Source: Anaeramoeba ignava BMAN (taxonomy: Eukaryota > Protista > Anaeramoebae). Taken from it: 64,000 nt of DNA. Of this stretch, positions 22,024 to 58,184 are shown one piece after another. The translations under genes and the position numbers were made by a program. Within the stretch, counting starts at the first letter, position 1. Each line of letters starts with the position of its first letter. Under the pieces are notes generated by a model. That model was not told where the DNA came from, did no database searches, and saw only the letters and a list, made by a program, of their open reading frames with translations. The DNA lies in NCBI GenBank assembly GCA_028826165.1, contig JAPDFW010000080.1:310001-374000 (forward strand). Reading direction: 5' to 3'.

Positions 22024-22254
22024 TTAAAAAATCAGACATTTTTGTTTTTGTTTCTTATTTTCTTTTAATTCTTTTTCTTTCAATTCTTGTTCTTTTGATT
22101 CTTTTTCTTTTGATTTTTTTTCTTTTTGTTCTTGTTCTTTTGATTCTTGTTCTTTTAATTCTTTTTCTTTCAATTCTTTTTCTTTTAATTCTTTTTCTTT
22201 TAATTCTTTTTCTTTTAATTCTTTTTCTTTCAATTCTTTTTCTTTTAATTTTTT

Positions 22255-22286
<32 letters not shown>

Positions 22287-24084
22287 TTTCTTTCAATTCT
22301 TGTTCTTGTTGTTTCATTTGATTATTAAATTTGTTAATTAATAAATCCAATAAATTTGGATATGTTTGATTTAATTGAAAATAATCAATTGCTCTTACAA
22401 TTTCAGGTATTATTTCACCTATAATTTCAATATCTTCTTTAATTTGATTTGAATAAATCCAATATTCAAATATTTGAAATGATTTATTACTTAATTCACT
22501 ATAATCTGTAACTTTATTAGATTTATCTTCTGTTACAGATAAAAACATTCCTCGATATAATTCACTTCTCATTATTAATATTAATTTTGGAAATTTATAT
22601 TTCTTTTCTTTTCTTTCAATAATAAAATCTTTTTCATTTTCATTTAAATAAATTCTTTTCATTGTTTCTTCTATTTTTTCATTGGAATTTATAATTTCTT
22701 TAATTTCAGAATATAATTTTGGATTTATTTTAGAATTATTTGAATAAATCATTTCAAATATTTGATTTGATTCTTTAATTGATTTATTTGAAATAATTTG
22801 TTGAAGTTTTTCAATTTGATTTTGATTTTGATTTAATCTATATTTTAATATTAATTTATGAGCTGAAATTATTGAACCATTTTCTGTTTTAAATGAAATA
22901 TCACAAAATTCTTTTCTTCTAAATAATTTTATCAAATCTTCTTCAAGATTGGAAAAAGAAGGAGGAGAATAATAAATAAATGAATTGTTAAATCCACAAG
23001 AAATATGATAATTAGAAATATTTTCATTAAATCTTAATTTAGGAAGTTCAATTTTATTTGGATTTTTATGTAACATTAGATTATCAGTTCCTAATTGACC
23101 TGAAGAATTGATTCCAAATCCAATCATTTTATTGTTTGTTGTTAAAATTAAAGTATGATTGAATCCAACAGAAATTTCAAGAATATCATCATTATTTTCA
23201 AATAAAGGTAAATTCAACTCAGTAAATTTATTTATTTGTTTTTGATGTCCATTGTATAAAAAAAACCCACTTGAATAAAGTTTTCTTTTTAGATTTTCAT
23301 CTTCATTTTCAATCAACATTATTGAATGGAAATTTCCACATTGAATATCAATTATTTTACCTTTTGGAACATTTTGGATTTGGGTTAATGTTTGGATTTT
23401 TGTTTCATCTTTTGTTGTTTCTCCTAATCCAAGTTGACCATGTTTATTAAAACCACATCCAAATAATTCTTGATTTGAATTTAAAAGAAAAACAAACTTG
23501 GAGGCATTTCCTGAAAATATTTTAGAAACATTTTTCATCATTAAAATTGGTTTTTTTGCTTTTTTAAGTGTTTTAGAATCAAAACCAAGTTGAGAATCAT
23601 AATTTAAACCAATTCCATAAGCATTTTGATTTGAAGTTAATAAATAAATTGAACTATCTCCAGAAACAATATCTTGAATTATTCTATCATTTGAATCTTC
23701 AATTAATGATGAAATATTGATAAATTCATTTGGATTTTTTGGATTAATATCTTCTCCTTTGGCAAATACACTTCCTTCTATTGTTAAAATAGCTTCATTT
23801 CGAAAACCAGCAGTTACTTTTTGAATATTTTCAATTTGGATTTTTTGAGGATTTTGTTTTGAATCATTTTCATTTAAATATTCTATTGCTTTTCCATTTT
23901 TAAAAAGGAAAATTGTTCCAAAATCACTTGTTGAAATTTGTTTAATTTGTTTTTCATTTTCATTTTCATTTTCATTTTCATTTTCATTTTCAAATTTAAA
24001 TTGAATTGGTTTTATTATTTTATTTGGCTTATTTTTTAAAAGTTTTGGTTCTTCATTTGAACCAAAAAATATAATTTCATTCAT
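22024..24084 (-). CDS. RCC1-repeat + tandem BTB protein (copy A') with a Lys/Glu extension and CaaX (CLIF)
   Basis: 686-aa ORF nearly identical to copy A up to INKFNN, then ~95 aa of KEKEL repeats ending KQKCLIF. Confidence 0.9.
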
Positions 24085-24178: not shown

Positions 24179-24465
24179 TTAATTTTGATTATTAAATTTA
24201 TTAATTAATAAATCAAATAAATTTGGATTTGTTTGATTTAATTGAAAATAATCAATTCCAATTTCAATTTCATTAATGATTTGTTGTGTAATTTGAATTT
24301 CTTCTTTAATTTGATTTGAATAAATCCAATATTCAAATATTTGAAATGATTTATTACTTAATTCACTATAATCTGTAACTTTATTTGATTTATCTTCAGT
24401 TACAGATAAAAACATTCCTCGATATAATTCACTTCTCATTATTAATATTAATTTTGGAAATTTAT
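24179..24465 (-). pseudogene. 3' fragment of RCC1-BTB copy B
   Basis: Matches the last ~95 codons of 14558-16336; homology stops abruptly near 24465. Confidence 0.8.
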
Positions 24466-24555: not shown

Positions 24556-26037
24556 ATGAAAAATTATTTAAATTTAGAAAAACTTTCAAATGATTTAAAA
24601 AATTTATTTCAAAATCAAAATCAAAATCAAAATCAAAATGAAAGTTATTTTGATTTTGAAATAATTTGTGAGCAAAATGAAATTTCATTTAAAACTCATA
24701 AATCAATTCTTTCTTCGAGAAGTCATTATTTTAAATCTCTTTTTAAATCTAAAATGAAAGAATATCAAGAAAATAAATTAATTCTAAAAGATGTTTCAAG
24801 TTCAATTCTATTTCCAATTTTGAATTATTTTTATTCAGGAAAGATTGAAATTAATTTAGAAAATGCAATTCAAATTTTAATTTTTTCATCAAAATATTTA
24901 ATTGATGAATTAATTGAAACTTGCTCAAAATTTATTAAAAAGAATTTTAAATTTGAAATTGCTGTTGATATTCTTAAATTATCTGAATCAATGAACTTAA
25001 ATAAATTATTAGATTATTCTTATCAATTTATTTCTAAAAATTTTAAAGAATTTATTAAAACTCCATTTTTTCTTGAACTTGAAGAAAATCATTTAAAATC
25101 AATATTATTAAATGATGAAATTCCAACAAATGAATTTGAAACGTTTCAATCAATAATAAAATGGGGAAAACATAAATCAAATATTAATCAAGAAAAACTT
25201 AAAAAAGAAGAAAAAGAAAAATTACAAAATCAAATTTCAAATCTTATTGATAAAATAAGATTTATTGATTTTTCAAAACAAGAACTTAAAGATACTTTAC
25301 AAGAAGAATTAATTCCAAATCAAATTTCACAAAAATTAATTCAATTCAAAAAACTTCAAAAAAATAAAAAAAATGAAAAAAAATTAAAAGAATTTATTGA
25401 AAAAGAAAATCAAAATTCATTCATTTTCAAATCAAGATTTAAATTTGATTCAGAAATTGTTAAAGATCGAGAACATATCAAGAAATTAAAAGAATGGATA
25501 AATGATAATGAATTCTTTTCCAAAATGAAAAAAGGATTTTCAGCAAAACGAGATGGGTTTAATTGCAAAAATTGGCATTCAATTTGTGATAATAAAGGAA
25601 AAACATTATTTATTATCAAAACAAAACAAAATTTTATTTTTGGAGGATTTACTTCAGTTGGATGGGCAAATGATAAATCAAAGTGGAGAGAAGATGATAG
25701 AAACGGAAGTGTTGGATTTATTTCAGATTCAAATGCATTTATTTTTTCATTAAGAAATGATAAAAATGATAGAAAACCAGAAAAATTTACAATTAAAAAA
25801 GGAAAAGAAGAATTTGCAATTTATTATGATTTAGGTGATGGTCCAACTTTTGGAAAATATGGGAATGGAAATGCTGAATTTTGTTTTCATTATGGTTTAC
25901 AAGGATATTATTCTAATTTTGGATATTGTTACAATCTTCCTAAAGGAATTAAATGGAATACAGGCAAATCTAGAAGTTATTTAGCTGGTTATGGATATGA
26001 TTGGGTTGTTGATGAACTTGAGACTTTTTTTATTTAA
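24556..26037 (+). CDS. BTB-BACK-TLDc protein copy 2 (intact)
   Basis: 493 aa: DFEIIC..THKSILSSRSHYFKSLF (BTB), BACK-like helices, then RDGF..CDNKGKT..IFGGFT..GPTFG..ELETF (TLDc). Confidence 0.9.
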   Translation: MKNYLNLEKLSNDLKNLFQNQNQNQNQNESYFDFEIICEQNEISFKTHKSILSSRSHYFKSLFKSKMKEYQENKLILKDVSSSILFPILNYFYSGKIEINLENAIQILIFSSKYLIDELIETCSKFIKKNFKFEIAVDILKLSESMNLNKLLDYSYQFISKNFKEFIKTPFFLELEENHLKSILLNDEIPTNEFETFQSIIKWGKHKSNINQEKLKKEEKEKLQNQISNLIDKIRFIDFSKQELKDTLQEELIPNQISQKLIQFKKLQKNKKNEKKLKEFIEKENQNSFIFKSRFKFDSEIVKDREHIKKLKEWINDNEFFSKMKKGFSAKRDGFNCKNWHSICDNKGKTLFIIKTKQNFIFGGFTSVGWANDKSKWREDDRNGSVGFISDSNAFIFSLRNDKNDRKPEKFTIKKGKEEFAIYYDLGDGPTFGKYGNGNAEFCFHYGLQGYYSNFGYCYNLPKGIKWNTGKSRSYLAGYGYDWVVDELETFFI

Positions 26038-29667: not shown

Positions 29668-32600
29668 ATGAATCTTAACCGACCCGAAACAGCTTTAACA
29701 TCAGATGAAGTGAATTTTTTAATATTTAAATATTTACAAGAAAGTGGGATGGATCATTCTGCATTTGTTTTTGCTCAAGAAAGCCAAGTTTTGAATTCTC
29801 CAATTGTTTTACAAGGTGATTCTGGTCTTCCTAAGGCTGCTTTAGTTACATTAATTCAAAAAGGTCTTCAATATACAGAAATTGAACAATCTTTATCAAA
29901 AGTAATTTTATAAATAATTTAATAAATAATTTTATAATTAATTTTATAAATAATTTTATATTTAATTTTATATTTAATTTTATAAGTAATTTTATAAATA
30001 ATTTTATAAATAATTTTATAAATAATTTTATAAATAATTTTATAAATAATTTTATAAATAATTTTATAAATAATTTTATAAATAATTTTATAAATAATTT
30101 TATAAATAATTTTATAAATAATTTTATATTTAATTTTATAAATAATTTTATAAATAATTTTATAAATAATTTTATAAATAAATTTTATAAAATTTTTTAT
30201 AAATAATTTTTATAAATAATTTTATAAATAATTTTGTAAAACAATTTTATATTTAATTTTAATTAATAATTTTTAAATAAATAATTTTATAAATAATTTT
30301 TATAAATAATTTTTATAAATAATTTTATAAATAATTTTATAATTAATTTAATAAATAATTTTTTATTTTATAAATAATTTTATAAATAATTTTATAAATA
30401 ATTTTATAAATAAATTTATATTTAATTTTATAAATAATTTTATTAATAATTTTATATTTAATTTTATAAATAATTTTATATTTAATTTTATAAATAATTT
30501 TATAAATAATTTTATAAATAATTTAATAAATAATTTAATAAATAATTTAATAAATAATTTTATAAATAATTTTATAAATAATTTTATAAATAATTAGGTT
30601 GATTTAGAACAAGAATTTTTTGAAAAAAAAAGAAAGAAAAAAGAAAGAAAAGATAAAGTATCAAAAGAAGAAAAAGCAAAAACAACAAGTAATACAAAAC
30701 AAGAGCCAAATACAAATGATGGAGAATCACAACAAGAAAAAGAAAATACAACAAAAAATTCATTAACAAAAAATACAGACAATCCAGATTTTGGAATTTC
30801 AAAAACATCAAATGATTCACAAAAACAAGATACTAATAACTTATCAGATCCCAAAAAAAATAGCAATATTCAAACTAATCAATCCCAGACTTTTTCAAAT
30901 CCTAATTCTAATTTTCCTGCTAAAATTAAATTCCTTGAAAATGATGTTAAAATTTTAAAAGGACATACTTCAGAAGTATTAAAAAATAATATTGACTATT
31001 TTAGATTTTTGAAAAATGAAAAAAGACAATTTATTTATTGTTTATTTCTTCTTTTTCTTCTTTTTTATTTAGGTTTTTGTTTGTCAATGGTCACCAAATG
31101 GTCGTTTTTTAGCTTCTGGGTAAATCTATTCAATTAAGCAAATTACAAATTACAAATTAAAAATTAAAAATTAAACAAATTAAAAATTAAAAATTAAAAA
31201 TTAAACAAATTAAAAATTAAAAATTAAAAATTAAAAATTAAAAATTAAAAACCATAATTAAATTGGAATATTTTTTTAGTTCTGGTGATACTACTGCTCG
31301 TATTTGGGATATTTCTTATTTAGAAACAAATAATATTAAATTAGATCAAATTCCATCTAAAGTTCTTAAACATCATAATTTAAATACAACTGTTTCAAGC
31401 AAAGATGTTACAACTTTAGATTGGCATGTAAATTGATTTTTTTTAAAAGAGAATTATTTAATTTAATTTCATTATTTTATTTAATTTTATTATTTTATTT
31501 TAGCCTCAAGGAGCATTTCTTGCAACAGGTTCTTATGATGGAATTGCAAGAATATGGAGAGAAGATGGTAAATTATTTTTTTAATTAAAATTAAAATGAA
31601 AATTAAAATGAAAATGAAAATGAAAATGAAAATGAAAATGAAAATGAAAATGAAAATGAAAATTAAAATCAAAATGAAAATGAAAATGAAAATTAAAATT
31701 AAAATTAAAATGAAAATTAAATTGAAAATGAAAATGAAAATGAAAATGAAAATGAAAATGAAAATGAAAATTAAAATTAAATTTGAATTTAATTTTATAA
31801 TTAATTTGAATGGAAAAAACAGGAGAAATTGTTAGTTCACTTGTAGGACATAAAAGTGCAATTTTTAGTTTGAAATGGAACAAAACAGGAGATTTTTTAC
31901 TGAGTGGATCATTAGATTCATCAGTGATAGTATGGGATACAAAAACAAACAGTCAAAAACAAATATTTCGAAAGCATACAGCGCCAACACTAGATGTTGA
32001 TTGGAGAACTCCAATTTGAATGGAAAAAACAGGAGAAATTGTTAGGTCATACTGATGAAGTTAATAATATTAAATGGGATCCTTCTGGTTTACTTCTTGC
32101 CTCTTGTTCTGATGATTTCACAGCAAAAGTAAAATATTTTAAATTTTAATTTTAATTTTAATTTTAATTTTAATTTTAATTTCATTTTGATTTTAATTGG
32201 GATTTTAAAAAACAAACAGTCAAAAACAAATTTATTTCGAATTTTTATTTTAATTTTAACATTTAGATGTTGATTGGAGAACTCCAATTTTAATTTTAAT
32301 TTTAATTGTAGTGTCGATTTTAAAAATTTTAATTTTTTAATTTTAATTGGTTTAAAGATATTTTAATTTTTTTTAATTATTAGATTTTTTAATGAAAAGG
32401 TCATACTGATGAACATTAATAATATTATAAAATGGGATCCTTCTGGTTTAATTTTATCAACAGCATCTTTTGATTGTTTTAATTAAAATATGGGATTTCA
32501 CAGCTTTTAAAAAGTATTTTAATTTTAATTTTAAAATTTTAATTTTAATTTTAATTTTAATTTTAATTTTAATTTAATTTTAATTTTAATTTTAATTTTA

Positions 32601-33969
32601 ATTTTAATTTTAATTTTAATTTTAATTTTAATTTTAATTTTAATTTTAAATTTTAATTTTAATTTTAATTTTAATTTTAATTTTAATTTTTAATTTTAAT
32701 TTTAATTTTAATTTTAATTTTAATTTTAATTTTAAATTTTAATTTTAATTTTAATTTTTAATTTTAATTTTAATTTAATTTTAATTTTAATTTTAATTTT
32801 AATTTTAATTTTTAATTTTAATTGAATTTTAATTTTAATTTTAATTTTAATTTTAATTTTAATTTTAATTTTAATTTTAATTTTAATTTTAATTTTGGAA
32901 ATTTTTAATGAAAATTTTGTTTTAATTTGATAATTTTAATTTTAATTTTAATTTTAATTTTAATTTAAAATTTAATTTTAAATTTTAATTTTAACACAGG
33001 ATTTTAAAAGGAACAAAATATTTAAATAAAGATTTTAATTTTTTTTAATTTTAATTTTTAATTTTCTTTTGATTTTGTTTATTTTAAAATTTATGGGATA
33101 TTTTAAAATTTCTAAATGGGCAAATTTTAATTTTAATTTTATTTTTAATTTTAATTTTAATTTCTAAATGAATTTCATTTTAATTTCTAAATAATTTTAA
33201 TTTTAATTTTAATTTTAATTTCTAAATGAATTTTAAATTTTAATTTTAATTTTAATTTTAATTTTTAATTTTGAATTTTAATTTTAATTTTAATTTTAAT
33301 TTTAATTTTAATTTTAATTTTAATTTTAATTTTTAATTTTAATTTTAATTTTAATTTTAATTTTTTTTAAAATTTTAATTTTAATTTTGATTTTAATTTT
33401 AATTTTTAATTTTAATTTTAATTTTTAATTTTAATTTTAATTTTAATTTTAATTTTAAAATTTTAATTTTAATTTTAATTTTAATTTAATTTTAATTTTA
33501 ATTTCTAAATGAATTTTGATTTGAATTTTAATTTTAATTTTAATTTTAATTTTAATTTCTAAATGAATTTCAATTTTAATTTTGATTTGAATTTTAATTT
33601 TAATTTCTAAATGAATTTTAATTTTAATTTTAATTTCTAAATGAATTTTAATTTTAATTTCTAAATGAATTTTAATATTAATTTCTAAATGAATTTTAAT
33701 ATTAATTTCTAAATGAATTTTAATTTTAATTTCAATTTCTAATAAAAAGATCACCAGTTTATTCAATTGCTTTTAGTCCAGATGGTGAATATTTAGCAAG
33801 TGGTTCATTTGATAAATCAATTTATATTTGGTCAGTAAAAACAGGAAATGTTGTTCGTTCTTATCAAGATACTGCTGGAATTTTTGAAGTAAGTTGGAGT
33901 CCAAATGGAGATAAAATTGCTGGAGCTTTTGCTGATCATAAAATTGCAATTCTTGATTTTAGGATGTGA
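29668..33969 (+). CDS. TBL1: TBL1/TBLR1 (Sif2/HOS15-like) LisH-WD40 protein, multi-exon; middle is garbled
   Basis: [22 protein letters not shown] (LisH), [82 protein letters not shown]. Confidence 0.85.
29910..30595. repeat. Intronic ~13-nt repeat (ATAAATAATTTT[A])
   Basis: Tandem array filling TBL1 intron 1. Confidence 0.85.
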
Positions 33970-34173
33970 TTCAATTAACTCCTTTTCCACTTTTTTTTTT
34001 GATTTTCCACTTTTTTTTTTGCTTTTTGCTTTTTTTTTTGGTTTAACAAACAAATTTTTTACTTTACTTTAATAATAAATCAATAAAACAAATTTAATTT
34101 TTAAAAAGTATTTTTTTCATTTTTTTCATTTTTTTCATTTTTTTCATTTTTCATTTTTTTTTAATTAATTATA

Positions 34174-35640
34174 ATGCAAAATAAAAAAGAAAAAGAAGAA
34201 GAAAAATATGATTTTATGTTGAACATATTATTAATTGGAGATTATGGAGTTGGAAAAACAAATATTGTAATGAGATATTCTGATAATGAATTTGGTAATT
34301 TTCCTGATACAATTTCTCAAGTCGAATTTAAAACAAAGAAAATAGAAATTGGAGGAAAAATAATTAAATTGGAACTTCGAGATTCATCTGGTCAAGGTTT
34401 TTATAATTAAAAATATTTTAATTTTTATTTTAATTTAAATTTTTATTTATTATTTTTCAAATTTAAAGAACGTGTTACACAAATTGGGCAATGTATCTTT
34501 TCTTAAAAAAAAAAGCAAATTTATTTCAAAAAATTAATATTAATCCAAAATCAATCCAAAATTATTTCATTATTATTTAAGCGTATTATAAAGGAGTTCA
34601 TGGAATTTTTTTAGTTTATGATATTACTAATAAAGATTCTTTTAGAAATATTAAAACAAGATGGTTTTATGATATCAGAAAATATGCAAATGAAAATGTT
34701 CAAATTATTTTAATTGGAAATAAAAATGATTTAGAAGAAAAAAGAATAATTTCAAAAGAAGAAGGAAAAGAATTTGCTGATAAATTAGAAATTCCTTTTT
34801 ATGAAATTTCTGCTAAAAATAATATTAATATTGATGATATTTTTTATCATTTAACAACAAATATTCTTGAAAATATTGATGAAAATAATCAATTACAACC
34901 AAGAATTAAAGATACAATTCAAAATGATTTTAAACAATTATTTGAAAGAAAAGAATTATGTGATTTTGAAATTGAATGTAAAGATGATCAAAATTCCATT
35001 TAATAAAATCAAAATTCCAATTCATAAATTAATTATTCAAAACAGATTAAAAATTAATGAAAATCAAATTAAAAATGAATTATATTCAATTTTATTACAA
35101 AATTCAGAAAAAGAAGTTAATATTTTATTAGAATGGATTTATTTTGGAAAAGTTTTATATTCAAATTTATCAATTTTAAAAGAATGGAAAAATAAACTTT
35201 CAAATATTTGTGAAATTGAATTTAAAAGAGGAACAAAATCATTTTTAAAAGATTTAGAAATATTAATGAATTCAGAAGAAACTAAAGATTTTCAAATTAT
35301 TTCAAATAATCAAATAATCAAAGTTCATAAAATAATATTATTAACCAGAAGTGAATTATATCGAGGAATGTTTATTAATGTAACTGAAGATAAAACCAAT
35401 CAAGTTCATGAATACAGTAATAAACAACTCGAAACTATTCAATCATTAATCCATTTTTTTTATACTGATGAACTTCCAAAAATTGAAAAATCAATAATTT
35501 ATGAAGAATTAAAAGAATGTGTTGATTATTTTCAATTAAATTCAAAAAGATTAATTCAAATTATTCAAAAAATTGAAAAAGAAATTGAAAATCAAAATCA
35601 AATTCAAATTCAAAATCAAAAGAAATGTTTAATTTTTTGA
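34174..35640 (+). CDS. Rab GTPase-BTB-BTB-CaaX fusion, copy 1 (1-nt insertion near 34994)
   Basis: Three exons including micro-exon 34469-34492. [20 protein letters not shown]; BTB tail; ends KKCLIF. An extra T relative to the paralogs breaks the frame. Confidence 0.75.
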
Positions 35641-35707
35641 AATTTTAAAAATATTTTTTTTCATTTTTTCATTTTTCATTTTTCATTTTTTCAATTAATG
35701 AATTATA
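35641..35707 (+). promoter_or_regulatory. 67-bp intergenic region with tandem TCATTTT(T) putative initiator motifs (representative example)
   Basis: The same motif lies within ~10-80 nt upstream of almost every ATG in the window, on the coding strand. Confidence 0.55.
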
Positions 35708-37160
35708 ATGCAAAATAAAAAAGAAAAATATGATTTTTTATTTAAAATTTTAATAGCTGGAGATTATAAAGTTGGAAAAACACAAATGCTATCAAGATTT
35801 TGTGATAATCAATTTACAGATGAATATAAAGAAACTATTGGAGTTGATTTAAAAATGGAAATAATAGAAATTGAAGGAAAAACAATTCAATTACAAATTT
35901 GGGATGTAGCTGGTCAAGGTTTTTATAATTAAAAATAATTAAAATATTAAAATATTCATATTTAAATTTAATTTTTATTTTCCAAATTTTAAAGATGACT
36001 TTAGATCGATTATTCCAAGTATCTTTTCTTAAAAAAAAAAGCAAATTTATTTCAAAAAATTAATATTAATCCAAAATTATTTCATTATTATTTAAGTGTA
36101 TTTTAGAGGAGCAAAAGGAGTTCTTTTAGTTTATGATATTACTAATCAAAATTCTTTTAATAATATTAAAACAAGATGGATTGAAGATATCAAAAAAAAT
36201 TTAAATAAAACTCTCCAAATGATTTTAATTGGAAATAAAAATGATTTAGAAGAAAAAAGAATAATTTCAAAAGAAAAAGGAAAAGAATTTGCTGATAAAT
36301 TACAAATTCCTTTTTATGAAGTTTCTGCTAAAAATAATATTAATATTGATGATGCTTTTTTTCATTTAGCAACAAATATTCTTGAAAATATTGATGAAAA
36401 TAATCAATTAAAACCAAAAAATAAATATACAATTCAAGAAGATTTTAAACAATTATTTGAAAGAAAAGAATTATGTGATTTTGAAATTGAATGTAAAGAT
36501 GATCAAAATCCTCTTAATAAAATCAAAATTCCAATTCATAAATTAATTATTCAAAACAGATTAAAAATTAATGAAAATCAAATTAAAAATGAGTTATATT
36601 CAATTTTATCACAAAATTCAGAAAAAGAAGTTAATATTTTATTAGAATGGATTTATTTTGGAAAAGTTTTATATTCAAATTTATCAATTTTAAAAGAATG
36701 GAAAAATAAATTTTCAAATATTATTTGTGAAATTGAATTTAAAAGAGGAACAACATCATTTTTAAAAGATTTAGAAATATTAATGAATTCAGAAGAAACT
36801 AAAGATTTTCAAATTATTTCAAATAAAAAAAAAATCAAAGTTCATAAAATAATATTATTAGCCAGAAGTGAATTATATCGAGGAATGTTTATTAATGTAA
36901 CTGAAGATAAAACCAATCAAGTTCATGAATACAGTAATAAACAACTTAAAACTATTCAATCATTAATTCATTTTTTTTATACTGATGAACTTCCAAAAAT
37001 TGAAAAATCAATAATTTATGAAGAATTAAAAGAATGTGTTGATTATTTTCAATTAAATTCAACAAGATTAATTCAAATTATTCAAAAAATTGAAAATGAA
37101 AAAGAAAAAGAAAAGGAAAAAAATGTGAATCCTTTCGAAACAAGATGTTTAATTTTTTGA
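35708..37160 (+). CDS. Rab GTPase-BTB-BTB-CaaX fusion, copy 2
   Basis: Micro-exon 35995-36018. GDYKVGKT, TIGVDL, WDVAGQDDFRSIIPMYFRGAKG, NKND, SAK; ends TRCLIF. Confidence 0.9.
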
Positions 37161-37226
37161 AATTTAAAAATATTTTTCATTTTTCATTTTTTCATTTTTC
37201 ATTTTTCATTTTTAATTATTTATAAA

Positions 37227-38664
37227 ATGAATAAAAAATCTTTAGGTTATGATTATGATTTTTTATTTAAATTTTTATTTATTGGAGATTATGGAGTTGG
37301 AAAAACAAAAATTTTAATAAGATTTTCTGATAATGAATTTGGTGATTTTCCTCTTTCAACTATTGGAGTTCAATTTAAAATAAAAACAATAGAAATTGAA
37401 GGAAAAATAATTAAATTACAACTTTGGGATACATCTGGTCAAGGTTTTTATAATTAAAATAATTTAAAATAATTCAATTTTTAATTTAATTTTAATTTAA
37501 CTTAATTATTATTTTCCAAATTTTAAAGAACGTTTTAGAGCACTTACTCCATGTATCTTTTCTTAAAAAAAAGAAAATTTATTTCAAAAAATTAATATTA
37601 ATCCAAAATCAATCCAAAATTATTTCATTATTATTTAAGCTTATTATAGAGGAGTTCATGGAATTTTTTTAGTTTATGATATTACTAATCAAGATTCTTT
37701 TAATAATATTAAAACAAGATGGATTGAAGATATCAATAAATATGCAAATGAAAATATTCAAATTATTTTAATTGGAAATAAAAATGATTTAGAAGAAAAA
37801 AGAATAATTTCAAAAGAAGAAGGAAAAGAACTTGCTGATAAATTACAAATTCCTTTTTATGAAGTTTCTGCTAAAAATAATATTAATATTGATGATGCTT
37901 TTTATCATTTAACAACAAATATTCTTGAAAATATTGATGAAGATGAAAATATAATTAAATATTCAATTCAAAATGATTTTAAACAATTATTTGAAAGAAA
38001 AGAATTATGTGATTTTGAAATTGAATGTAAAGATGCTCAAAATTCTCTTAATAAAATCAAAATTCCAATTCATAAATTAATTATTCAAAATAGATTAAAA
38101 ATTAATGAAAATCAAATTAAAAATGAGTTATATTCAATTTTATCACAAAATTCAGAAAAAGAAGTTAATATTTTATTAGAATGGATTTATTTTGGAAAAG
38201 TTTTATATTCAAATTTATCAATTTTAAAAGAATGGAAAAATAAACTTTCAAATATTTGTGAAATTGAATTTAAAAGAGGAACAAAATCATTTTTAAAAGA
38301 TTTAGAAATATTAATGAATTCAGAAGAAACTAAAGATTTTCAAATTATTTCAAATAAAAAAAAAATCAAAGTTCATAAAATAATATTATTAGCCAGAAGT
38401 GAATTATATCGAGGAATGTTTATTAATGTAACTGAAGATAAAACCAATCAAGTTCATGAATACAGTAATAAACAACTTAAAACTATTCAATCATTAATTC
38501 ATTTTTTTTATACTGATAAACTTCCAAAAATTGAAAAATCAATAATTTATGAAGAATTAAAAGAATGTGTTGATTATTTTCAATTAAATTCAACAAGATT
38601 AATTCAAATTATTCAAAAAATTGAAAATGAAAAAGAAAAAGAAAAGAAATGTTTAATTTTTTGA
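37227..38664 (+). CDS. Rab GTPase-BTB-BTB-CaaX fusion, copy 3
   Basis: Exons 37227-37443, 37529-37552 and 37640-38664. [37 protein letters not shown]; ends KKCLIF. Confidence 0.9.
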
Positions 38665-38724
38665 AATTTAAAAAATATTTTTTTTCATTTTTTCATTTTT
38701 CATTTTTTCAATTAATGAATTATA

Positions 38725-40295
38725 ATGCAAAATAAAAAAGAAAAATATGATTTTTTATTCAGAATTCTTATGCTTGGAGATTCTGGAGTTGGAAAAACAA
38801 GTTTATGGAAAAGATATTGTGATAATTTTTTTACAGATAAATATACCTTCAATGTTGGAGCTGATTTCAAAACAAAAAAAATAGAAATTGAAGGAAAAAT
38901 AATTCAATTACAAATTTGGGATGTAGCTGGTCAAGGTTTTTATAATTTAAAAACAATTTAAATTATTCAATTAATTTAAATTAATTTTTCAATTTATTTT
39001 TAGCTCGTTATAGAACAATTACTTCATGTATCTTTTTTAAAAAAAAGCAAATTTATTCTAAAAATCAATAATTGAAAATCAATCCAAAATTAATCCAAAA
39101 TTATTTCATTATTATTTAAGCTTATTTTAGAGCAGCAAAAGGAGTTCTTTTAGTTTATGATATTACTAATCAAAATTCTTTGAGAAATATTAATGGTTAT
39201 TGGATGGAAGAAATCAAAGAATTTACAGATGAAAATCTTCAAATTATTTTAATTGGAAATAAAAATGATTTAGAAGAAAAAAGAATAATTTCAAAAGAAA
39301 AAGGAAAAGAATTTGCTGATAAATTACAAATTCCTTTTTATGAAGTTTCTGTTAAAAATAATATTAATATTGATGATGCTTTTTATCATTTAACAACAAA
39401 TATTCTTGAAAATATTGATGAAGATGAAAATATAATTAAATATTCAATTCAAAATGATTTTAAACAATTATTTGAAAGAAAAGAATTATGTGATTTTGAA
39501 ATTGAATGTAAAGATGCTCAAAATCCATTTAATAAAATCAAAATTCCAATTCATAAATTAATTATTCAAAACAGATTAAAAATTAATGAAAATCAAATCA
39601 AAAATGAATTATATTCAATTTTATTACAAAATTCAGAAAAAGAAGTTAATATTTTATTAGAATGGATTTATTTTGGAAAAGTTTTATATTCAAATTTATC
39701 AATTTTAAAAGAATGGAAAAATAAACTTTCAAATATTTGTGAAATTGAATTTAAAAGAGGAACAAAATCATTTTTAAAAGATTTAGAAATATTAATGAAT
39801 TCAGAAGAAACTAAAGATTTCCAAATTATTTCAAATAAAAAAAAAATCAAAGTTCATAAAATAATATTATTAGCCAGAAGTGAATTATATCGAGGAATGT
39901 TTATTAATGTAACTGAAGATAAAACCAATCAAGTTCATGAATACAGTAATAAACAACTTAAAACTATTCAATCATTAATTCATTTTTTTTATACTGATAA
40001 ACTTCCAAAAATTGAAAAATCAAAAATTTATGAAGAATTAAAAGAATGTGTTGATTATTTTCAATTAAATTCAACAAGATTAATTCAAATTATTCAAAAA
40101 ATTGAAAATGAAAAAGAAATTCAAAATCAAAATCAAAATCAAAATCAAAATCAAAATCAAAATCAAAATCAAAATCAAAATCAAAATCAAAATCAAAATC
40201 AAAATCAAAATCAAAATCAAAATCAAAATCAAAATCAAATTCAAAATCAAAATCAAAATCAAAATCAAAATCAAAAGAAATGTTTAATTTTTTGA
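38725..40295 (+). CDS. Rab GTPase-BTB-BTB-CaaX fusion, copy 4 (long NQ linker)
   Basis: Micro-exon 39004-39027. GDSGVGKT, NVGADF, WDVAGQARYRTITSSYFRAAKG, SVK; (NQ)n then KKCLIF. Confidence 0.9.
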
Positions 40296-40366
40296 AATTT
40301 TAAAAATATTTTTTTTCATTTTTCATTTTTCATTTTTCATTTTTCAATTAATTAATTATTTATAAA

Positions 40367-41842
40367 ATGAATAAAAAATCTTTAGGTTATGATTATGATT
40401 TTTTATTTAAAATTTTATTTATTGGAGATTATAGAGTTGGAAAAACAAGTTTATGGAAAAGATATTGTGATAATAAGTTTGGTGATTATGATTTAAGTGT
40501 TGATTTCAAAATAAAAATGATAGAAATTGAAGGAAAAATAATTAAATTACAAATTTGGGATACATCTGGTCAAGGTTTTTATAATTAAAAATAATTTAAA
40601 ATATTCAAATTTAAATTCAAAATTAATTTTTAATTTAATTTTTATTTTCCAAATTTTAAAGAACGTTTTAGACCAATTCCATCAGGTTTTTTTTAAAAAA
40701 AAACAAATTTATTTCAAAAAATTAATATTAATCCAAAATCAATCCAAAATTATTTCATTATTATTTAAGCTTATTATAGAGCAGTTCATGGAATTATTTT
40801 AGTTTATGATATTACTAATAAAGATTCTTTTAATAATATTAATAATTTTTGGATTGAAGAAATCAAAAAATATGCAAATGAAAATCTTCAAATTATTTTA
40901 ATTGGAAATAAAAATGATTTAGAAGAAAAAAGAATAATTTCAAAAGAAGAAGGAGAAGATTTTACTGATGAATTACAAATTCCTTTTTATGAAGTTTCTG
41001 CTAAAAATAATATTAATATTGATGATGCTTTTTTTCATTTAGCAACAAATATTCTTGAAAATCTTGGTAAAGATAGTCAATTAAAAACAAGAATCAATGA
41101 AAGAAATAAATATACAATTCAAGAAGATTTTAAACAATTATTTGAAAGAAAAGAATTATGTGATTTTGAAATTGAATGTAAAGATGATCAAAATCCATTT
41201 AATAAAATCAAAATTCCAATTCATAAATTAATTATTCAAAACAGATTAAAAATTAATGAAAATCAAATCAAAAATGAGTTATATTCAATTTTATTACAAA
41301 ATTCAGAAAAAGAAGTTAATATTTTATTAGAATGGATTTATTTTGGAAAAGTTTTATATTCAAATTTATCAATTTTAAAAGAATGGAAAAATAAACTTTC
41401 AAATATTATTTGTGAAATTGAATTTAAAACAGGAACAAAATCATTTTTAAAAGATTTAGAAATATTAATGAATTCAGAAGAAACTAAAGATTTTCAAATT
41501 ATTTCAAATAATCAAATAATCAAAGTTCATAAAATAATATTATTAACCAGAAGTGAATTATATCGAGGAATGTTTATTAATGTAACTGAAGATAAAACCA
41601 ATCAAGTTCATGAATACAGTAATAAAGAACTTAAAACTATTCAATCATTAATCCATTTTTTTTATACTGATGAACTTCCAAAAATTGAAAAATCAAAAAT
41701 TTATGAAGAATTAAAAGAATGTGTTGATTATTTTCAATTAAATTCAACAAGATTAATTCAAATTATTCAAAAAATTGAAAAAGAAATTCAAAATCAAAAT
41801 CAAAATCAAAATCAAAATCAAAAGAAATGTTTAATTTTTTGA
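40367..41842 (+). CDS. Rab GTPase-BTB-BTB-CaaX fusion, copy 5
   Basis: Micro-exon 40662-40685. GDYRVGKT, shortened switch I (DYDLSVDF), WDTSGQERFRPIPSAYYRAVHG; ends KKCLIF. Confidence 0.9.
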
Positions 41843-41915
41843 AATTTAAAAAATATTTTTTTTCATTTTTTCATTTTTCATTTTTCATTTTTCATTTTTC
41901 AATTAATTAATTATA

Positions 41916-43334
41916 ATGCAAAATAAAAAAGAAAAATATGATTTTATGTTTAAAATTGTATTAGTTGGTTTTTTTGAAGTTGGAAAAACACAAATTTTAT
42001 CAAGATTTTGTGATAATCAATTTACAGATGAATATGAACAAACTATTGGAGCTGCTTTCAAAACAAAAACAATAGAAATTGAAGGAAAAATAATTAAATT
42101 ACAACTTTGGGATATATCTGGTCCAGGTTTTTATAATTAAAAATAATTTAATTTAATTTAATTTCAATTTTAAATTATTTTCCAAAATTTAAAGAACGTT
42201 TTAGAACAATTACTCCAAGTATCTTTTCTTAAAAAAAAAGCAAATTTATCTCAAAATATTAATATTAATCCAATATTAATCCAAAATTATTTCATTATTA
42301 TTTAAGTGTATTTTAGAGGAGCAAAAAGGTTTTTAGTTTATGATATTACTAATCAAGATTCTTTGAGAAATATTAATGGTTATTGGATGGAAAAAATCAA
42401 AGAAGTTACAAATGAAAATCTTCAAATGATTTTAATTGGAAATAAAAATGATTTAGAAGAAAAAAGAATAATTTCAAAAGAAAAAGGAAAAGAATTTGCT
42501 GATAAATTACAAATTCCTTTTTATGAAATTTCTGTTAAAAATAATATTAATATTGATGATGCTTTTTATCATTTAACAACAAATATTCTTGAAAATATTG
42601 ATTATAATGAAGATGAAAATATAATTAAATATACAATTCAAAATGATTTTAAACAATTATTTGAAAGAAAAGAATTATGTGATTTTGAAATTGAATGTAA
42701 AGATGACCAAAATCCTCTTAATAAAATCAAAATTCCAATTCATAAATTAATTATTCAAAATAGATTAAAAATTAATGAAAATCAAATCAAAAATGAGTTA
42801 TATTCAATTTTATTACAAAATTCAGAAAAAGAAGTTAATATTTTATTAGAATGGATTTATTTTGGAAAAGTTTTATATTCAAATTTATCAATTTTAAAAG
42901 AATGGAAAAATAAACTTTCAAATATTTGTAAAATTGAATTTAAAACAGGAACAACATCATTTTTAAAAGATTTAGAAATATTAATGAATTCAGAAGAAAC
43001 TAAAGATTTCCAAATTATTTCAAATAATCAAAAAATCAAAGTTCATAAAATAATATTATTAGCCAGAAGTGAATTATATCGAGGAATGTTTATTAATGTA
43101 ACTGAAGATAAAACTAATCAAGTTCATGAATACAGTAATAAACAATTCAAAACTATTCAATCATTAATCCATTTTTTTTATACTGATGAACTTCCAAAAA
43201 TTGAAAAATCAAAAATTTATGAAGAATTAAAAGAATGTGTTGATTATTTTCAATTAAATTCAACAAGATTAATTCAAATTATTCAAAAAATTGAAAATGA
43301 AAAAGAAAAAGAAAAGAAATGTTTAATTTTTTGA
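41916..43334 (+). CDS. Rab GTPase-BTB-BTB-CaaX fusion, copy 6
   Basis: Micro-exon 42195-42218. GFFEVGKT, QTIGAAF, WDISGPERFRTITPMYFRGAK, SVK; ends KKCLIF. Confidence 0.9.
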
Positions 43335-43396: not shown

Positions 43397-44520
43397 TTAA
43401 ATATCTTCAGTATCATAATAAAGCTGTTCCTTTTTTAAATTGTTTAATTTAGTTTGAGCAACAAACCATTTCTCTTCAAAATTATTTGAACGATCAATAC
43501 CATCCCACCAAGGACCAGGAGGGATATTAAATCTATTTTTAGAATGAGGACCATTATAAATTTTTTTTGGTTTAGGAATTATTGTTGATCCATCAAGATG
43601 ATAATATTTTTTATTTGAATTTTCATTTGAATTTTTTAAATTTTCATTTGAATTTCCATTTGAATTTTTTAAATTTTCATTTTTTGAATTTTCATTGAAA
43701 TTTTCATTTTTTGAATTTTCATTGAAATTTTCATTTAAATTTTCATTTGAATTTGAATTTTCATTCAATTTATCCTTGTGTTTCTTTCTATGTTTTCTTT
43801 TTTTTTCCTTCTTTTTTTCCTTCTTTTTTTGTTTCTTCTTTTTTTTCTTCATTTCCTTTTTATCCTTTTCATTTTCATCAACAATATCAATATAATTTTG
43901 CAAAGGATCACCCCATCTTTGTTTAGATTTATAATAATCATTAAGTTCTTCATCATCAGAATATTGAGTAAATTTAGTATCATTTTTTGCCAGTTCAAGT
44001 TCTTGTTTTTTCTTGTCATTTTTCCCAATTCCCCATTCCATTTCAGCTTCATCTGTTTGAATATATTCACCTCTTTGTTGGTTTAAAAATTCATTTAACA
44101 TTTCTAATTTTCTTCCATGTCGATCAACTGGAAATTCTTCTTCTTTTTGTTTTCTTTGTTTAATTTTATATTGATTTTGTTTTTGAAAATTTCTAGTATT
44201 TTCTGTTGAATTTGAAACTGTTTTCCAACTTCCTGTTGGTTTATTTTCCTTTAAATCTTTTAAATTAAATATAAATTAAATTTTTAAATTAAATTTTTAA
44301 ATTAAATTTTTCAATTAAATTTTTAAATTAAATTTTTCAATTAAATTTTTAAATTAAATTTTTATTTACTTTTTATATTGGAAAGATCAATAAATTGTGT
44401 ATTTGTGTTATTTTTTAAAAAGTCCTCATCTTCATCTATAATTTTTATTCCTTTTTGTTTAGATTTTCTTTTTTTAATTTTTTTTTTTGTTTTATCAATA
44501 TATTTTTGTTTATCAGACAT
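43397..44520 (-). CDS. BUD13: RES complex splicing factor BUD13/CWC26
   Basis: Exons 44520-44370 and 44256-43397. RWGDPL, NRFNIPPGPWWDGIDRSNNFEEKWF. Confidence 0.9.
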
Positions 44521-44741: not shown

Positions 44742-47700
44742 ATGTCAACCACAAATAAATCACTTTCTTCTTGGATTTTGAAATTAAAAGGAAGTAGTAT
44801 TAATTTTATAAATAATGATAAAAAGCTTTCTTATCAATTATGCGAATTAATAAATGCAATTATTCCAAATAAAATACCAAAAATTTCAATGTAAATTAAA
44901 ATTCATTTTAAAATTAATATCAATATTAAAATTAATATCAATATTAAAAATAAAATCTAAATTAAAATTAAAATTAATATCAATATTAAAATTAAAATCT
45001 AAATTAATATTAAAATCTAAATTAAAATAAAATTCCAATTAAAATCTAAATTAAAATCAAAATCTAAATTAAAATTAAAATTAAAATTAAAATTAAAATT
45101 CATTTATAAAATTAAAATTAAAATTAAAATCTAAATCTAAATTAATATTAAATTAAAATTAAAATCTAAATTAAAATCAAATCAAAATTAAAATTCAAAT
45201 TAAAATTCAAATTATAAATTAAAATTAAAATTAAAATTAAAATTAAAATTAAAATCAAAATTAATATTAAAATTAAAATTAAAATTAAAATTAAAATCTA
45301 AATTAAAATTAAAATTAAAATTAAAATCTAAATTAAAATCAAAATTCCAATCACCATCATAAATTAAAATTAAAATTAAAAATAAAATTCCAATTAAAAT
45401 CTAAATTAAAATTAAAATCTAAATCAAAATTAAAAATCTAAATTAAAATTAAAATCTAAATCAAAATTCAAATTATAAATTAAAATTCATTTTGAAATTA
45501 AAATTAAAATTAAAATTAAAAATAAATAGGTTTGATTCAATATACAATTACAAGCAATTCCTCTTATTCTGCCAAGAATATGGTGTCTCCAAGGAATTCT
45601 TATGTACACCATTAGACATAATCAAAGACCCAAACAAAGATTATCTTTATCCAATTTTAATTGAACTCAAAAAAATACATGAAAAAAAACAAAACAAAAA
45701 CATCAAAAAATATTTATTCGTTCAACACACAGAAGAAATTTATCAACAAAAAAACTGGAAAGCACCCCAAGAAATTCCACTAACACAACAAGAAACAATT
45801 CAAAATTTAACATTAAGTAACAAAGCACTTGAAAAAACACGAAAAAAGGCAAAAGCGTATTTTATTGAAGGAAAAGTAGAATTTCCAGTCAAACTTGTTA
45901 ACCTAGCAAACACAAAAAGTGATGAAATTGAAGATGATTTTGAAGTGAATTTGTATATGGATTCAGAAAGAATTAAAATATTGATTTTCAATGAAATTTA
46001 CATTGAACATAAATCGCTTGAAAAAACAGAAATTAAATTATTATATGATAGTAAAGAATCAGATCTAATGATGTTGCAGATGAAGAATTTGCCACCGGTT
46101 TATATGAGATGCTCAAGTTCAACAGATCGACATATAATTGGACTTACCTTTTATTTATTCCAAACTTACTCACACCCACAACATTATCTGGAGATTTTTT
46201 CTCGCAACAAAGCAAAATTTCTCGGCGAAGAACTCGAGAAATCCATGGTTGTGGAAAAACTAGCAAAAAAAGGAAACGTTATTTTTGAGGAACTTCGGAT
46301 TCTCAACAATGATTCAAATCTTGAAAATTGTTCGCTTCAACTGGAGGCTGATCGAATGTATATAATTTTTGAAACGCTTTCGACACCGCCAATTCTGATC
46401 ACTTTTAGCGAGTTTTTCCGCGCAAAGTTTGACCAGAATAGCGACCATAACATTTCTTTTGAATATGGGGAATATGTTGCAGAAAAAATAATCTTCATAT
46501 TTTGCAAGAATAAATTGATTCGCGATTTAATTTGCAGTTGTGTTAATGAATTCCATTCGAATTACAAAAGAATAGTTAAAGAAGACGAGAAGGTTTTTGA
46601 AGGACAAAGAAAGCGAATTGAGGAAAAAAATCCTGTTGTTCATCAGCCGATCAATTATCATGAATTCGAGTGCAAGGTTCATGTTAATAACCAAATTATT
46701 GAAAAGGCACAAATTTTTGTGGAATATAATGGTCTCAAAATCGTCTGCAATAATTGTACTTATACAAGTTTATATAATAAATTTTCAGGGATTATGCATC
46801 ATGAACAAGCAAAGAATTTGCTGTGTATTTCTTTTGATTTGCTTCCAAATTCATCTCTTGTGATTGAATTTCCAACACAAAAAAAGGCAGAAGAATTTTC
46901 AATTTATTTCAGTATTTTCCAGAACTTAAATGATGTAAAAAAAACGCAATCAATAACACCTCAATCAACTAATAGCAAAGAGGAAACGTTCCAAGCATTT
47001 TTCCACACGATGAACACGGAAGGAGTCGAGGAGGGTGCTATTACGATCAAGGAGCAAACAATGGTGCTCATTTTTTCAGGAATGCATTTTGCTCGTTTGA
47101 TTGAAAACTCGAATATTTTTTGGCAGCCTTGCTCTTCTTATTGCACAGCAATTCTCGACAAAAAAAAGCAAGTCATATTCCACTTCAGCGGCCAAAATGT
47201 GCGATGCAAGTTTATTGAGGATTATAATCGCCAGAGGACGCTGAACAATCTTTTCAAGGCGCAAGTTAACGCGTTCGAGAAAAAAACACTGGAAAACAAA
47301 AACAAACCCTTTTCTATATTTAAAGTTGATTATGGGAAGACCTTTTTCCAATTTACAGACAAAATCAAGATCAAAATTGATCATCAAGAAATCCAGTTTT
47401 TTGTAAAAGACCAGATTTTGCATGCATTTTTTAACGATCCTAATTTGGGATTTAGTACTTTGGAAACTCACCCAAAAATCTTGAAAATTAAATTCTCGGG
47501 CGATTCTGAAATTGTTATTCGGTTTGCAAATATAAATGATGCAGAAAAAGCAACGAAAATCATCAAGAAAAATCTGGTGAAAAACCGAATGGAAAAAGAC
47601 TCGAAAAATTTTTCGCGAACAGCAATTGAAGAGGAGATTCGGAATTTGGAAGAAATACGAAGAATCAAAGACCAGGAATATATGGTGAGAATGGCAGTAG

Positions 47701-49469
47701 GGCATCACCAATCAGAAGAACTAGAACAATCCATTCATAAGCCAGCATTTTATCCTTATTTAGTGACGACGAAGGATGATGTTGAGGGGAATATGCAGCG
47801 CTCGATAGATTTTGCGTGGCATGCGATTGCAAGATTTACTCGGCATTATTCAATGGATCGTTCAGGCGTCGATAAAGTAATCCTCAACTTTGCAAATGGG
47901 GAAGCAATGTTCAAAATTTTGCTGATGAAAAATGGAGTTGTTGACCAGGAAGCACACATGCATATCGATAAACACGGATTCTTGATCAAGTTCAGTCATC
48001 AATCAGAGAATTTAATATATTATACTTTTGGAGAGAATAATCCAGCAAGAATTCGCAGGGGAAAGAAATTTGTTGACTTTGTTCTGAACGCGGCGGATCA
48101 AGAAATAATGTTCGAAGTAGATTCGCTTGCGAACAATTATATTTTATGGAAAAGTTTTTTGATGATTCAGTACTACACACCCAAGAAAATCCGCGCGCTC
48201 GAATTACCCGCATATATTCTCGATGAAGAAGACGAAATTAACGCTCTTCTTCTTCGGTTCTTCTCAGAATCGCCGACTTTCGGTGTTGAAGTTTTCTTTT
48301 CTTCTTCCAAAATTTCTGCGAGTGTAAAAGTGGATTGGGTGCAAATCTCAATTTTTCTTCAAAACGGCCAGCAATTCTATTTTCCTTGGTCGGAGCACAC
48401 AACCATGTTTTATCTTGATTCGTATTCCCGTCGAGTCATTAAACTTAGCGGCATTTCTCAAGATAGTTATATTGCTCTTTATCTCGTTCTTAATAATCAT
48501 GTTTCTGCTCGTGCTCTTTATCTTTGCTTCCTTATCTTCAGGTTCTTTTCTCTTGATGAACCTCTTAAAAAACCCGCTTTTATTAATGATACTCTTATGA
48601 ACCGTTTCCATTCTATTTTGAACTCAAAGAATTCTCTTCTTTCTTTCTTAAAAAACTTCAGTAATTTTGATGAATTTGCTGATTTTTTTTCGATTGATTT
48701 AGAATTTGATCAAAAAGATTTGGATAATTTTTTACCAGTTCAAAAAAAAGAAAATCAAAATCAAAATGAAATTGAAATTGAAATTGAAAATAAAATTGAA
48801 AATGAAAATAAAATTGAAAATGAAAATAAAATTGAAAATCAAAATCAAATTGAAAATCAAAATCAAAATCAAAATCAAAATCAAAATCAAAATCAAAATC
48901 AAAATCAAAATCAAAATCAAAATCAAAATCAAAATCAAATTGAAAATCAAATTGAAAATCAAAATCAAAATCAAAATCAAAATCGCAGTTTTTCTCAAAT
49001 TCCAAGAACTAAACGAGTTGTAAGACTTGAAAAAGATCTCCAAAAAAAAGACAGAAAAAAACAAAATATTCTTCATAGTTATACTAAGTCTTCTTTTGAA
49101 CAAACTGATATTGATCAAATTAAACAGAAAAAACAAGAAGAACTTGAGTTAAGAGTTTTTCAAGAAATACAAAATATTTGGTCCAAAGTTCCTGTTAATT
49201 TGAATGTTTTGATTCAATTAAATACTAAATTTATTCCTGCAATTCTTAAAATAAATAAGAAATTTCTACAAATTAGAAGTCAAAATTTGAAAAAAAATTG
49301 GAAAAGTAAATGGAAAAGTTTATCAATTCAAAATTTGGATAAAAATTCTCTTTTTGTTGTTTTTCGATTTGCTAAAAATCAAGTTTTATCTTTATATTTT
49401 GATTCTTTATATGAACTTTTATTGTGTGTTTCTGCAGTTAATTATAAGCAAAATTTAAAAAGAAAATGA
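44742..49469 (+). CDS. Large protein (~1360 aa) with an N-terminal calponin-homology domain and repeated PH-like segments
   Basis: Exons 44742-44890 and 45530-49469. The spliced N-terminus LSSWI..LCELINAIIPNKIPKI..NYKQFLLFCQEYGV..CTPLDI is CH-like; the remainder alternates beta-rich blocks with amphipathic helices. Confidence 0.65.
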
Positions 49470-57805: not shown

Positions 57806-58184
57806 TATAAAAAACAAAAGAAAAAAATGAAAAAAATGAAAAAAATAAAAATTAAAAAAATGAAAAAAATAAAATTGTTTTTATTTTTGTTTTTGTTTTT
57901 TTTGTTTGGTTTTTAATGTTTGGCTTTGTAAAAAGAAAAATTAAAAAAAAAAATTTTTTAAAAATCAAAAAAAAGAAAAAAAAATAAACTTTGATAAAAA
58001 AAAAACCATTTCTGAATTTTGTTCCAAAAAAAACAGTTAAACAATCCGTGAAAATTAAACATTTCAGAACTGTTTTCTAGCCAAACTGAATCATTCTTGA
58101 ATTAAAAATTATGAAAAAGAAAAAAAAAATGAGTAAAATTGAAATTGGTTTTTTTTTTGTTTGTTGTTTTTTTTTTAAATCAAA

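Follow-up and report, generated by a model that had tools for sequence, protein, structure and literature searches.

Six tandem Rab-BTB-BTB genes in Anaeramoeba ignava

A 64,000-bp window of A. ignava DNA (the whole stretch analysed here, from contig JAPDFW010000080.1 of assembly GCA_028826165.1, to which a database protein 100% identical to exon 3 of copy 3 also maps) carries, at positions 34174-43334 of its forward strand, six genes arranged head to tail, in which a Rab-type small GTPase domain (G domain) is joined to two BTB domains (BTB1 and BTB2) and a C-terminal CaaX box, CLIF. They belong to a real, lineage-specific and apparently undescribed family, although GTPase-headed cullin adaptors as a kind are already known. 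The A. ignava genome is about 81% A+T, and its assembly is based on Nanopore reads with Illumina polishing (PMC11550330). The features of the array, with domain boundaries given for copy 3, are as follows.

34174-35640 (+), copy 1: frameshifted, the downstream cassette open in another frame to CLIF; exons 34174-34396, 34469-34492, 34582-35640
35708-37160 (+), copy 2: intact, 432 amino acids (aa); exons 35708-35918, 35995-36018, 36097-37160
37227-38664 (+), copy 3 (P0001, KAJ5072770.1): intact, 421 aa; exons 37227-37443, 37529-37552, 37640-38664
38725-40295 (+), copy 4: intact, 469 aa, CLIF being preceded by a long QN repeat; exons 38725-38935, 39004-39027, 39121-40295
40367-41842 (+), copy 5: intact, 434 aa; exons 40367-40574, 40662-40685, 40770-41842
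41916-43334 (+), copy 6 (P0002, KAJ5072772.1): intact, 420 aa; exons 41916-42126, 42195-42218, 42307-43334
37227-37938 (+), G domain of copy 3: Rab1/Rab8-like, interrupted by both introns, without a Rho insert
37957-38268 (+), BTB1 of copy 3: degenerate, without the alpha3/beta4 Cul3-contact segment
38284-38613 (+), BTB2 of copy 3: canonical, nearest to SPOP/KBTBD, followed by one C-terminal helix
38650-38664 (+), CLIF CaaX box and stop of copy 3: identical DNA in the others at 35626, 37146, 40281, 41828 and 43320
37161-37226, spacer with TTTTTCA repeats before the ATG of copy 3: such spacers, 60-73 bp long, precede each ATG, also at 35641-35707, 38665-38724, 40296-40366, 41843-41915 and upstream of copy 1

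As had been proposed from the sequence alone, the genes contain two short introns and are closely spaced, with intergenic gaps of 67, 66, 60, 71 and 73 bp (60-75 bp had been expected). Each consists of three exons, the first stopping at the G3 motif, the second measuring 24 nt and the third being long; both introns are GT-AG, lie in phase 1 and occupy identical codon positions in all six copies, the second eight codons past the first. Copies 2-6 can be read in frame through the Rab-BTB-BTB organization to the CLIF stop, as the original prediction had it for every copy. Copy 1 is the exception: one additional base at about 34994 leads to a stop at 35001-35003 inside BTB1, so that the gene as assembled encodes the Rab domain and about 30 residues of BTB1. 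This frameshift is possibly an assembly error, because one copy of a second array, described below, has an additional A at the equivalent position, and many copies of that array shift frame near A runs.

The two NCBI protein models that correspond to copies 3 and 6 match our gene models, and the breakpoints of the former were mapped directly. The annotation fuses copies 1 and 2 (800 aa) and copies 4 and 5 (893 aa) into single models, which we regard as annotation merges since a separate ATG, stop and upstream repeat-bearing spacer belong to every copy. We also ruled out duplication by the assembler: exon 1 residues differ by 26-55% among the copies, and the same gradient of divergence is seen between separate contigs. 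Pfam matches of the array genes to the Ras and BTB families are far above chance, and the scan of the array proteins returned Ras-type and BTB families only, with no SOCS box. Searches used single exons or the database proteins of copies 3 and 6 as queries, copies 1, 2, 4 and 5 being handled exon by exon.

Domain identity

The G domain is Rab1/Rab8-like and not Rho, in keeping with the original assignment. Its closest solved structures are Rab8A, Rab10 and Rab1, and its closest database relatives are Rab1/Ypt1/RabD and Rab10 (52-62% identity). The Rho reference was an intronless Rac/Rho-type GTPase gene from the same window (59444-60019, minus strand), which has a Rho insert and itself ends in CLIF; the array G domain is 30% identical to this Rac, as opposed to 55% to a Rab1. 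NKxD and G5 stand 24 apart, a Rab-like spacing, compared with 37 in the Rac, and there is no Rho insert. Over the full protein the AlphaFold2 model has a mean pLDDT (the predicted local confidence score) of 92.5; the best fold matches of the G domain are Rab1a and Rab8a, with which it superposes at about 1 Å. In a tree with Rac as outgroup the array domains fall with Rab1/Rab8 (Shimodaira-Hasegawa-like approximate likelihood-ratio support 92), although the tree shows long-branch artefacts: they form long branches beside the Rab1+Rab8 group without picking either subfamily, for which their scores are nearly equal. RabF1-F5 are recognizable in all six copies, F5 being exact in all and F1-F4 carrying substitutions. 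The motifs originally quoted for the family proved to be a composite consensus, as LVYDIT occurs in all six copies, whereas IGVxF is found in copy 3 only, RFRxIT in copy 6 only and YYRGA in exact form in none.

With Rab1 and Rab8 the array proteins thus share 54-60% G-domain identity, the RabF motifs and the fold. They differ in what follows: Rab1 and Rab8 end in a CC/CxC tail after a short hypervariable region, whereas the array proteins lack such a tail near the G domain, continue for about 240 residues through a linker of roughly 10-20 residues that is not proline-rich and through the BTB domains, and end in the single-cysteine CLIF, which is also found on cassette proteins without a Rab; their switches are often degenerate as well.

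That the remainder of the protein contains two BTB-like domains was borne out by structure prediction. Pfam scored BTB2 clearly and BTB1 at 17 bits, under its cut-off, and direct BLASTP of BTB1 against BTB2 gave no match; a profile-profile comparison, however, matched them with a probability of 96.9%. BTB1 is a degenerate BTB: it contains no large insert, and the alpha3/beta4 segment of BTB2 is missing from it. The AlphaFold2 model of the pair (pLDDT 91.9, predicted template-modelling score 0.88) retrieved with Foldseek, at the top, two single-chain POZ heterodimers, Miz1/BCL6 and Miz1/Nac1, aligned across about 240 columns at a template-modelling score of about 0.6, followed by KBTBD2-Cul3 and SPOP-Cul3. 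The model suggests that BTB1 and BTB2 probably pack as an internal single-chain pseudo-dimer.

A modular cassette in two Anaeramoeba species

The family is indeed expanded, with about 22 Rab-BTB-BTB genes on six contigs of A. ignava: the array described above, a second array of ten, and six further full copies plus one partial copy on four other contigs. Members of the family and other GTPase-headed cassette genes outside the window include the following.

L002, 2586-17846 (JAPDFW010000058.1): second array, ten Rab-BTB-BTB genes; many one-base shifts, by which CLIF is lost or the NCBI model split
L006, 8001-16455, and L010, 8001-20353: A. flamelloides Rab-BTB-BTB genes; long introns, no CaaX, acidic insert in BTB2
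L009, 6001-7242, and L011, 4001-5182: intronless Ras-like-BTB-BTB-CaaX genes of A. ignava and A. flamelloides; GTPase motifs strongly degenerate

In the second array, a frameshift precedes the end of BTB2 in three of ten copies, and another five lack CLIF; the frameshifts inspected lie in or beside homopolymer runs of the Nanopore-based assembly. The mapped A. ignava models share both intron positions where both are annotated, and their cassettes form one clade (98/99).

Dozens of Anaeramoeba proteins carry the same BTB-BTB cassette, often with CLIF, behind an RCC1 or ankyrin head, and three of these are encoded in this window. A profile search of 1.84 billion representative sequences showed that, among the best 150 matches, all proteins combining a GTPase with the cassette come from Anaeramoeba; these matches extend down to 188 bits, and fusions with divergent domains elsewhere would escape them. 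They include Ras-like heads in both Anaeramoeba species, with the tails CLIF, CSIM and CQIM; from A. flamelloides there are also two proteins with Rab heads, which have no CaaX. No cassette relatives were found in the viral and metagenome contigs searched. The cassette is intronless in all genes mapped, and 17 of 70 cassette proteins with RCC1, ankyrin or Ras heads end in CLIF: the CaaX box moves with the cassette, not with the Rab. Rather than a stand-alone, Rab-based analogue of RhoBTB, as had been proposed, the Rab genes are one branch of a modular, Anaeramoeba-specific BTB-BTB-CaaX adaptor system.

The Rab-cassette fusion arose more than once. One A. flamelloides Rab fusion (P0300), the Rab motifs of which are nearly canonical, has six introns, all different from those of A. 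ignava, and its cassette is placed beside that of an RCC1 protein from A. flamelloides (97/92); a single clade of all Rab-BTB-BTB genes was rejected (approximately unbiased test, p-AU 0.0013). Homogenization of cassettes within each species could also yield this tree, but not the intron differences, and together these observations indicate a separate fusion in A. flamelloides. The fusions on L006 and L010 are apparently independent.

The RCC1-BTB-BTB genes of the window, which are intronless, lie on the minus strand at 12713-14476, 14558-16336 and 22024-24084, with a fragment at about 24230-24463; the third ends in CLIF after a KE-rich tail. Dozens of such genes are present in A. ignava, an expansion that is seemingly undescribed. 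Two BTB-BACK-TLDc genes on the plus strand (24556-26037 and 20252-21738, the latter split into two open reading frames, ORFs) each adjoin an RCC1-BTB-BTB gene or fragment, and these pairs suggest a local segmental duplication.

Evolution of the array

At the nucleotide level the six copies diverge by a distance of 0.23 over exon 1, 0.34 over exon 2 and 0.15 over the start of exon 3, compared with 0.07 for the intron between the variable exons and 0.02 for each BTB. At the protein level, identity is 61% in exon 1, 42% in exon 2 and 66% over the first 45 codons of exon 3, rising to 90% over what remains of the G domain and to 96% across the BTBs. Since the same gradient is also seen between arrays, it is not an artefact of polishing. 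The copies are mosaics, in which the nearest neighbour switches along the gene: in a permutation test for recombination, two G-domain segments showed clustering that none of 2000 permutations reached, and copy 6, judged by its exon 1, falls with a member of the other array, whereas the BTBs group by array. Tandem duplication and recombination keep the cassette uniform and reshuffle the presumed bait.

Codon models were fitted with our own implementation of MG94, which includes the AT bias. The ratio of nonsynonymous to synonymous rates (omega) lies at 0.25-0.44 in the BTBs, most fits placing it below 1, and at 0.6-2.3 in exons 1 and 2 and the opening 45 codons of exon 3; the G domain gives 0.56-1.0, reaching about 2 in one six-copy segment without being significantly above 1. 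Neutrality is rejected for BTB2 (twice the log-likelihood difference 19 and 11) and, in an 11-copy set, for exon 1. Under these models, raw pN/pS values above 1 no longer amounted to proof of positive selection. Positive selection on the Rab part is suggested, but is not established because site models are nominally significant in BTB2 as well.

Bait or switch

On balance, we lean towards reading the array proteins as membrane-anchored adaptors for a cullin-RING ligase, most likely of the Cul3 type, in which the Rab domain serves as a variable bait and not as a switch. CaaX boxes of the CaaL/F form suit geranylgeranyl transferase I. CLIF would be prenylated, judging from the motif, and hold the protein on a membrane; normal cycling by GDP dissociation inhibitor (GDI) would be unlikely, because the CaaX cysteine lies about 240 residues from the G domain. 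BTB1 and BTB2 are predicted to pair within one chain in the manner of a BTB dimer, with the cullin bound by BTB2 only, which would make the adaptor monovalent. The N-terminal Rab would be an exchangeable substrate head, placed in the architectural slot that RCC1, ankyrin and Ras heads occupy in the sister proteins. Because the switch face differs between copies, the Rab-binding proteins baited for ubiquitination may differ from one paralogue to the next, candidates being effectors, GEFs (guanine nucleotide exchange factors), GAPs (GTPase-activating proteins) or foreign Rab-targeting proteins.

The state of the switches bears directly on the role of the Rab domain. G1 GKT, G4 and G5 are retained in all six copies, so that the Rab fold likely still binds guanine nucleotide, as far as motifs can tell. 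Copies 2 and 3 additionally keep the G2 Thr and G3 Gln. In copy 1, both G3 (DSSGQ) and switch II are degenerate; in copy 4 the P-loop is canonical and the switch I Thr is replaced by Asn; copy 5 has lost the G2 Thr through a three-codon deletion in switch I; and copy 6 combines the P-loop GFFEVGKT with a G3 of DISGP, in which the catalytic Gln has become Pro. In several of the more distant paralogues, G1 or G3 is gone entirely. The nucleotide-switchable adaptors originally envisaged would therefore fit copies 2 and 3, and are doubtful for much of the family. A related model, in which the Rab cycles between GDP and GTP under its own GEF and GAP, marks an endosome, phagosome or symbiosome, and ubiquitinates effectors only when GTP-bound, has a precedent in Rab40 (PMC10509765), and agrees with the expansion of Rab families in A. 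ignava (PMC11550330), with the intact motifs of copies 2 and 3, and with those of P0300. We nevertheless consider it unlikely, as copies 4, 5 and 6 and several paralogues lack switch or catalytic residues, and the switch regions are the most variable, whereas fixed regulators should conserve them. The evidence of this analysis gives the genes no link to the symbiosome, and thus none to the symbiont-vacuole role that had been entertained.

For the adaptor reading, the cullin contact is the critical element. The best matches of BTB2 are SPOP, KBTBD2 and KBTBD4, which makes the originally proposed cullin-adaptor role, and cullin binding by BTB2 alone, plausible at the level of sequence. The alignment with SPOP spans the Cul3-contact helix and loop, with V-T-E after RGMF one residue before the position of M-E-E in SPOP. 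A phi-x-E/D-like motif is found in 62 of 78 relatives and is absent from BTB1; phi-x-E is the main Cul3 contact (PMC3616122). The RSE-x-x-R-x-MF helix is among the columns that are invariant across the whole cassette family. Eight cullins, of any type, are counted in A. ignava, versus more than 30 cullin genes in each A. flamelloides strain, a difference on which the main text of the genome paper is silent (PMC11550330, Suppl. Data 4).

Several observations weigh against the adaptor reading. The loop ahead of the phi-x-E-like motif is 1-2 residues shorter than in SPOP, and BTB2 is followed by one long helix (residues 400-420) with no clear pair, so that a full 3-box is not evident, whereas tight Cul3 binding by SPOP requires its BACK/3-box region (PMC3616122). 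The top Foldseek matches are POZ domains of transcription factors and not cullin adaptors. No transcript-derived sequence for the array genes was found in database searches. Finally, the case for positive selection falls short: M2a is preferred over M1a at p 0.003-0.03, but for BTB2 as well, in a test that recombination inflates. The incomplete 3-box, the shortened loop, the non-ligase POZ dimers among the structural matches and the lack of the phi-x-E-like motif in some cassette members would all suit a scaffold or sponge operating without a cullin, in which the BTB pair is a spacer or oligomerization module displaying Rab-like surfaces that titrate Rab regulators without ubiquitination; we rate this still lower than the switchable ligase, as the invariant helix corresponds to the cullin-contact region of known adaptors. 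Mostly neutral birth and death, whereby a mobile cassette hits random genes, tandem copies accumulate and the Rab part decays, could account for a G-domain omega often indistinguishable from 1 and for the interrupted or CLIF-less copies of both arrays, but is improbable given the rejection of neutrality noted above, the fact that even paralogues with an overall identity of about 45% retain G4, G5 and the core of the fold, and the position of the inspected frameshifts at homopolymer runs.

An extension of the bait model, which we regard as speculative and rather unlikely, would make the array a protist immune repertoire, with decoy Rab1/Rab8 domains baiting bacterial Rab-targeting effectors and delivering them to a cullin ligase. 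In that scenario the decoys would be diversified by recombination and selection, and would form one arm of a large modular receptor system of RCC1-, ankyrin-, Ras- and Rab-headed BTB-BTB-CaaX proteins. Legionella uses Rab-targeting effectors. The related species A. pumila is reported to harbour a Legionellales symbiont bearing Dot/Icm (bioRxiv 10.64898/2026.04.11.717937), which indicates that such pressure exists in the genus, though no result of this analysis ties it to the array genes.

Comparison with known systems

RCBTB1/2, IBTK and ABTB1 combine a repeat-domain head with BTB domains, and the same head types are found on the Anaeramoeba cassette, as a likeness of architecture; the array proteins differ in having a GTPase head and a CaaX tail. 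The GTPase followed by two tandem BTBs is shared with RhoBTB1/2/3 and Dictyostelium RacA (PMC4931677, PMC8305917). RhoBTB proteins are Cul3 adaptors, with RhoBTB3 ending in CaaX (PMC4931677, PMC8305917), and combine a Rho domain with a proline-rich stretch that links this GTPase to BTB1 and with a bipartite first BTB that binds Cul3 (PMC4931677). Compared on these published features, membership of the array genes in RhoBTB was rejected: their G domain is Rab1/8-like without a Rho insert, the linker is not proline-rich, and BTB1 is shortened, not bipartite and devoid of the Cul3 loop. They are also shorter (about 420 versus 600-730 aa), have no clear BACK/3-box and form a multi-copy diversifying array.

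Two precedents qualify the idea of an undescribed system. Rab40 is a Rab with a SOCS box that acts as a Cul5 adaptor and ubiquitinates Rab-bound proteins (PMC10509765), and the design of a Rab domain with a C-terminal cullin-recruiting module, predicted here, is common to both. Rab40, however, is Rab18-derived and uses the SOCS box, whereas the array family has BTB-BTB, a Rab1/8-like domain with often degenerate switch residues and about 22 copies, and originated independently, in a metamonad. Malawimonas californiana is reported to have a Rab-BTB-BACK-Arf protein as well as BTB-Arf fusions, both interpreted as having been drawn into ubiquitin circuits (PMC8358228); this too is a lineage-specific joining of Ras-superfamily domains with BTB, but in single proteins with BTB-BACK and an Arf domain, and no tandem BTB-CaaX cassette or array has been reported. 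No description of Rab-BTB-type fusions in Anaeramoeba was found in a literature search, most subscription papers being outside its range. The main text of the A. ignava genome paper never mentions BTB, and apparent members of the array family, as judged from neighbouring locus tags, are placed there simply among the Rabs (PMC11550330).

Other genes in the window

The array is flanked upstream by a WD40 gene (30800-33970, plus strand), which has a very long intron full of repeats, and downstream by Bud13 (43397-44101, minus strand) and a 1325-codon ORF with no Pfam match (45492-49469, plus strand). Further minus-strand genes encode an S41-family peptidase with a C-terminal membrane-spanning stretch (10126-12631), a DEAD-box helicase (56489-57817) and linker histone H1 (58596-59000); two ORFs at 16372-17393, also on the minus strand, look cyclin-like by eye but have no Pfam match.

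Implications

In two Anaeramoeba species, small GTPase domains, as Rab and Ras heads, have been joined repeatedly and independently to one BTB-BTB-CaaX cassette. The arrangement predicts a monovalent, single-chain, pseudo-dimeric BTB adaptor that would bind the cullin on its second BTB rather than on the first. Part of the published count of "unassigned Rabs" in A. ignava (187 genes; PMC11550330, Suppl. Data 6) apparently consists of this family and not of trafficking Rabs. If the variable Rab face does act as a decoy for bacterial effectors, the array would offer an instance of integrated-decoy immunity, open to testing, in a protist that lives freely.

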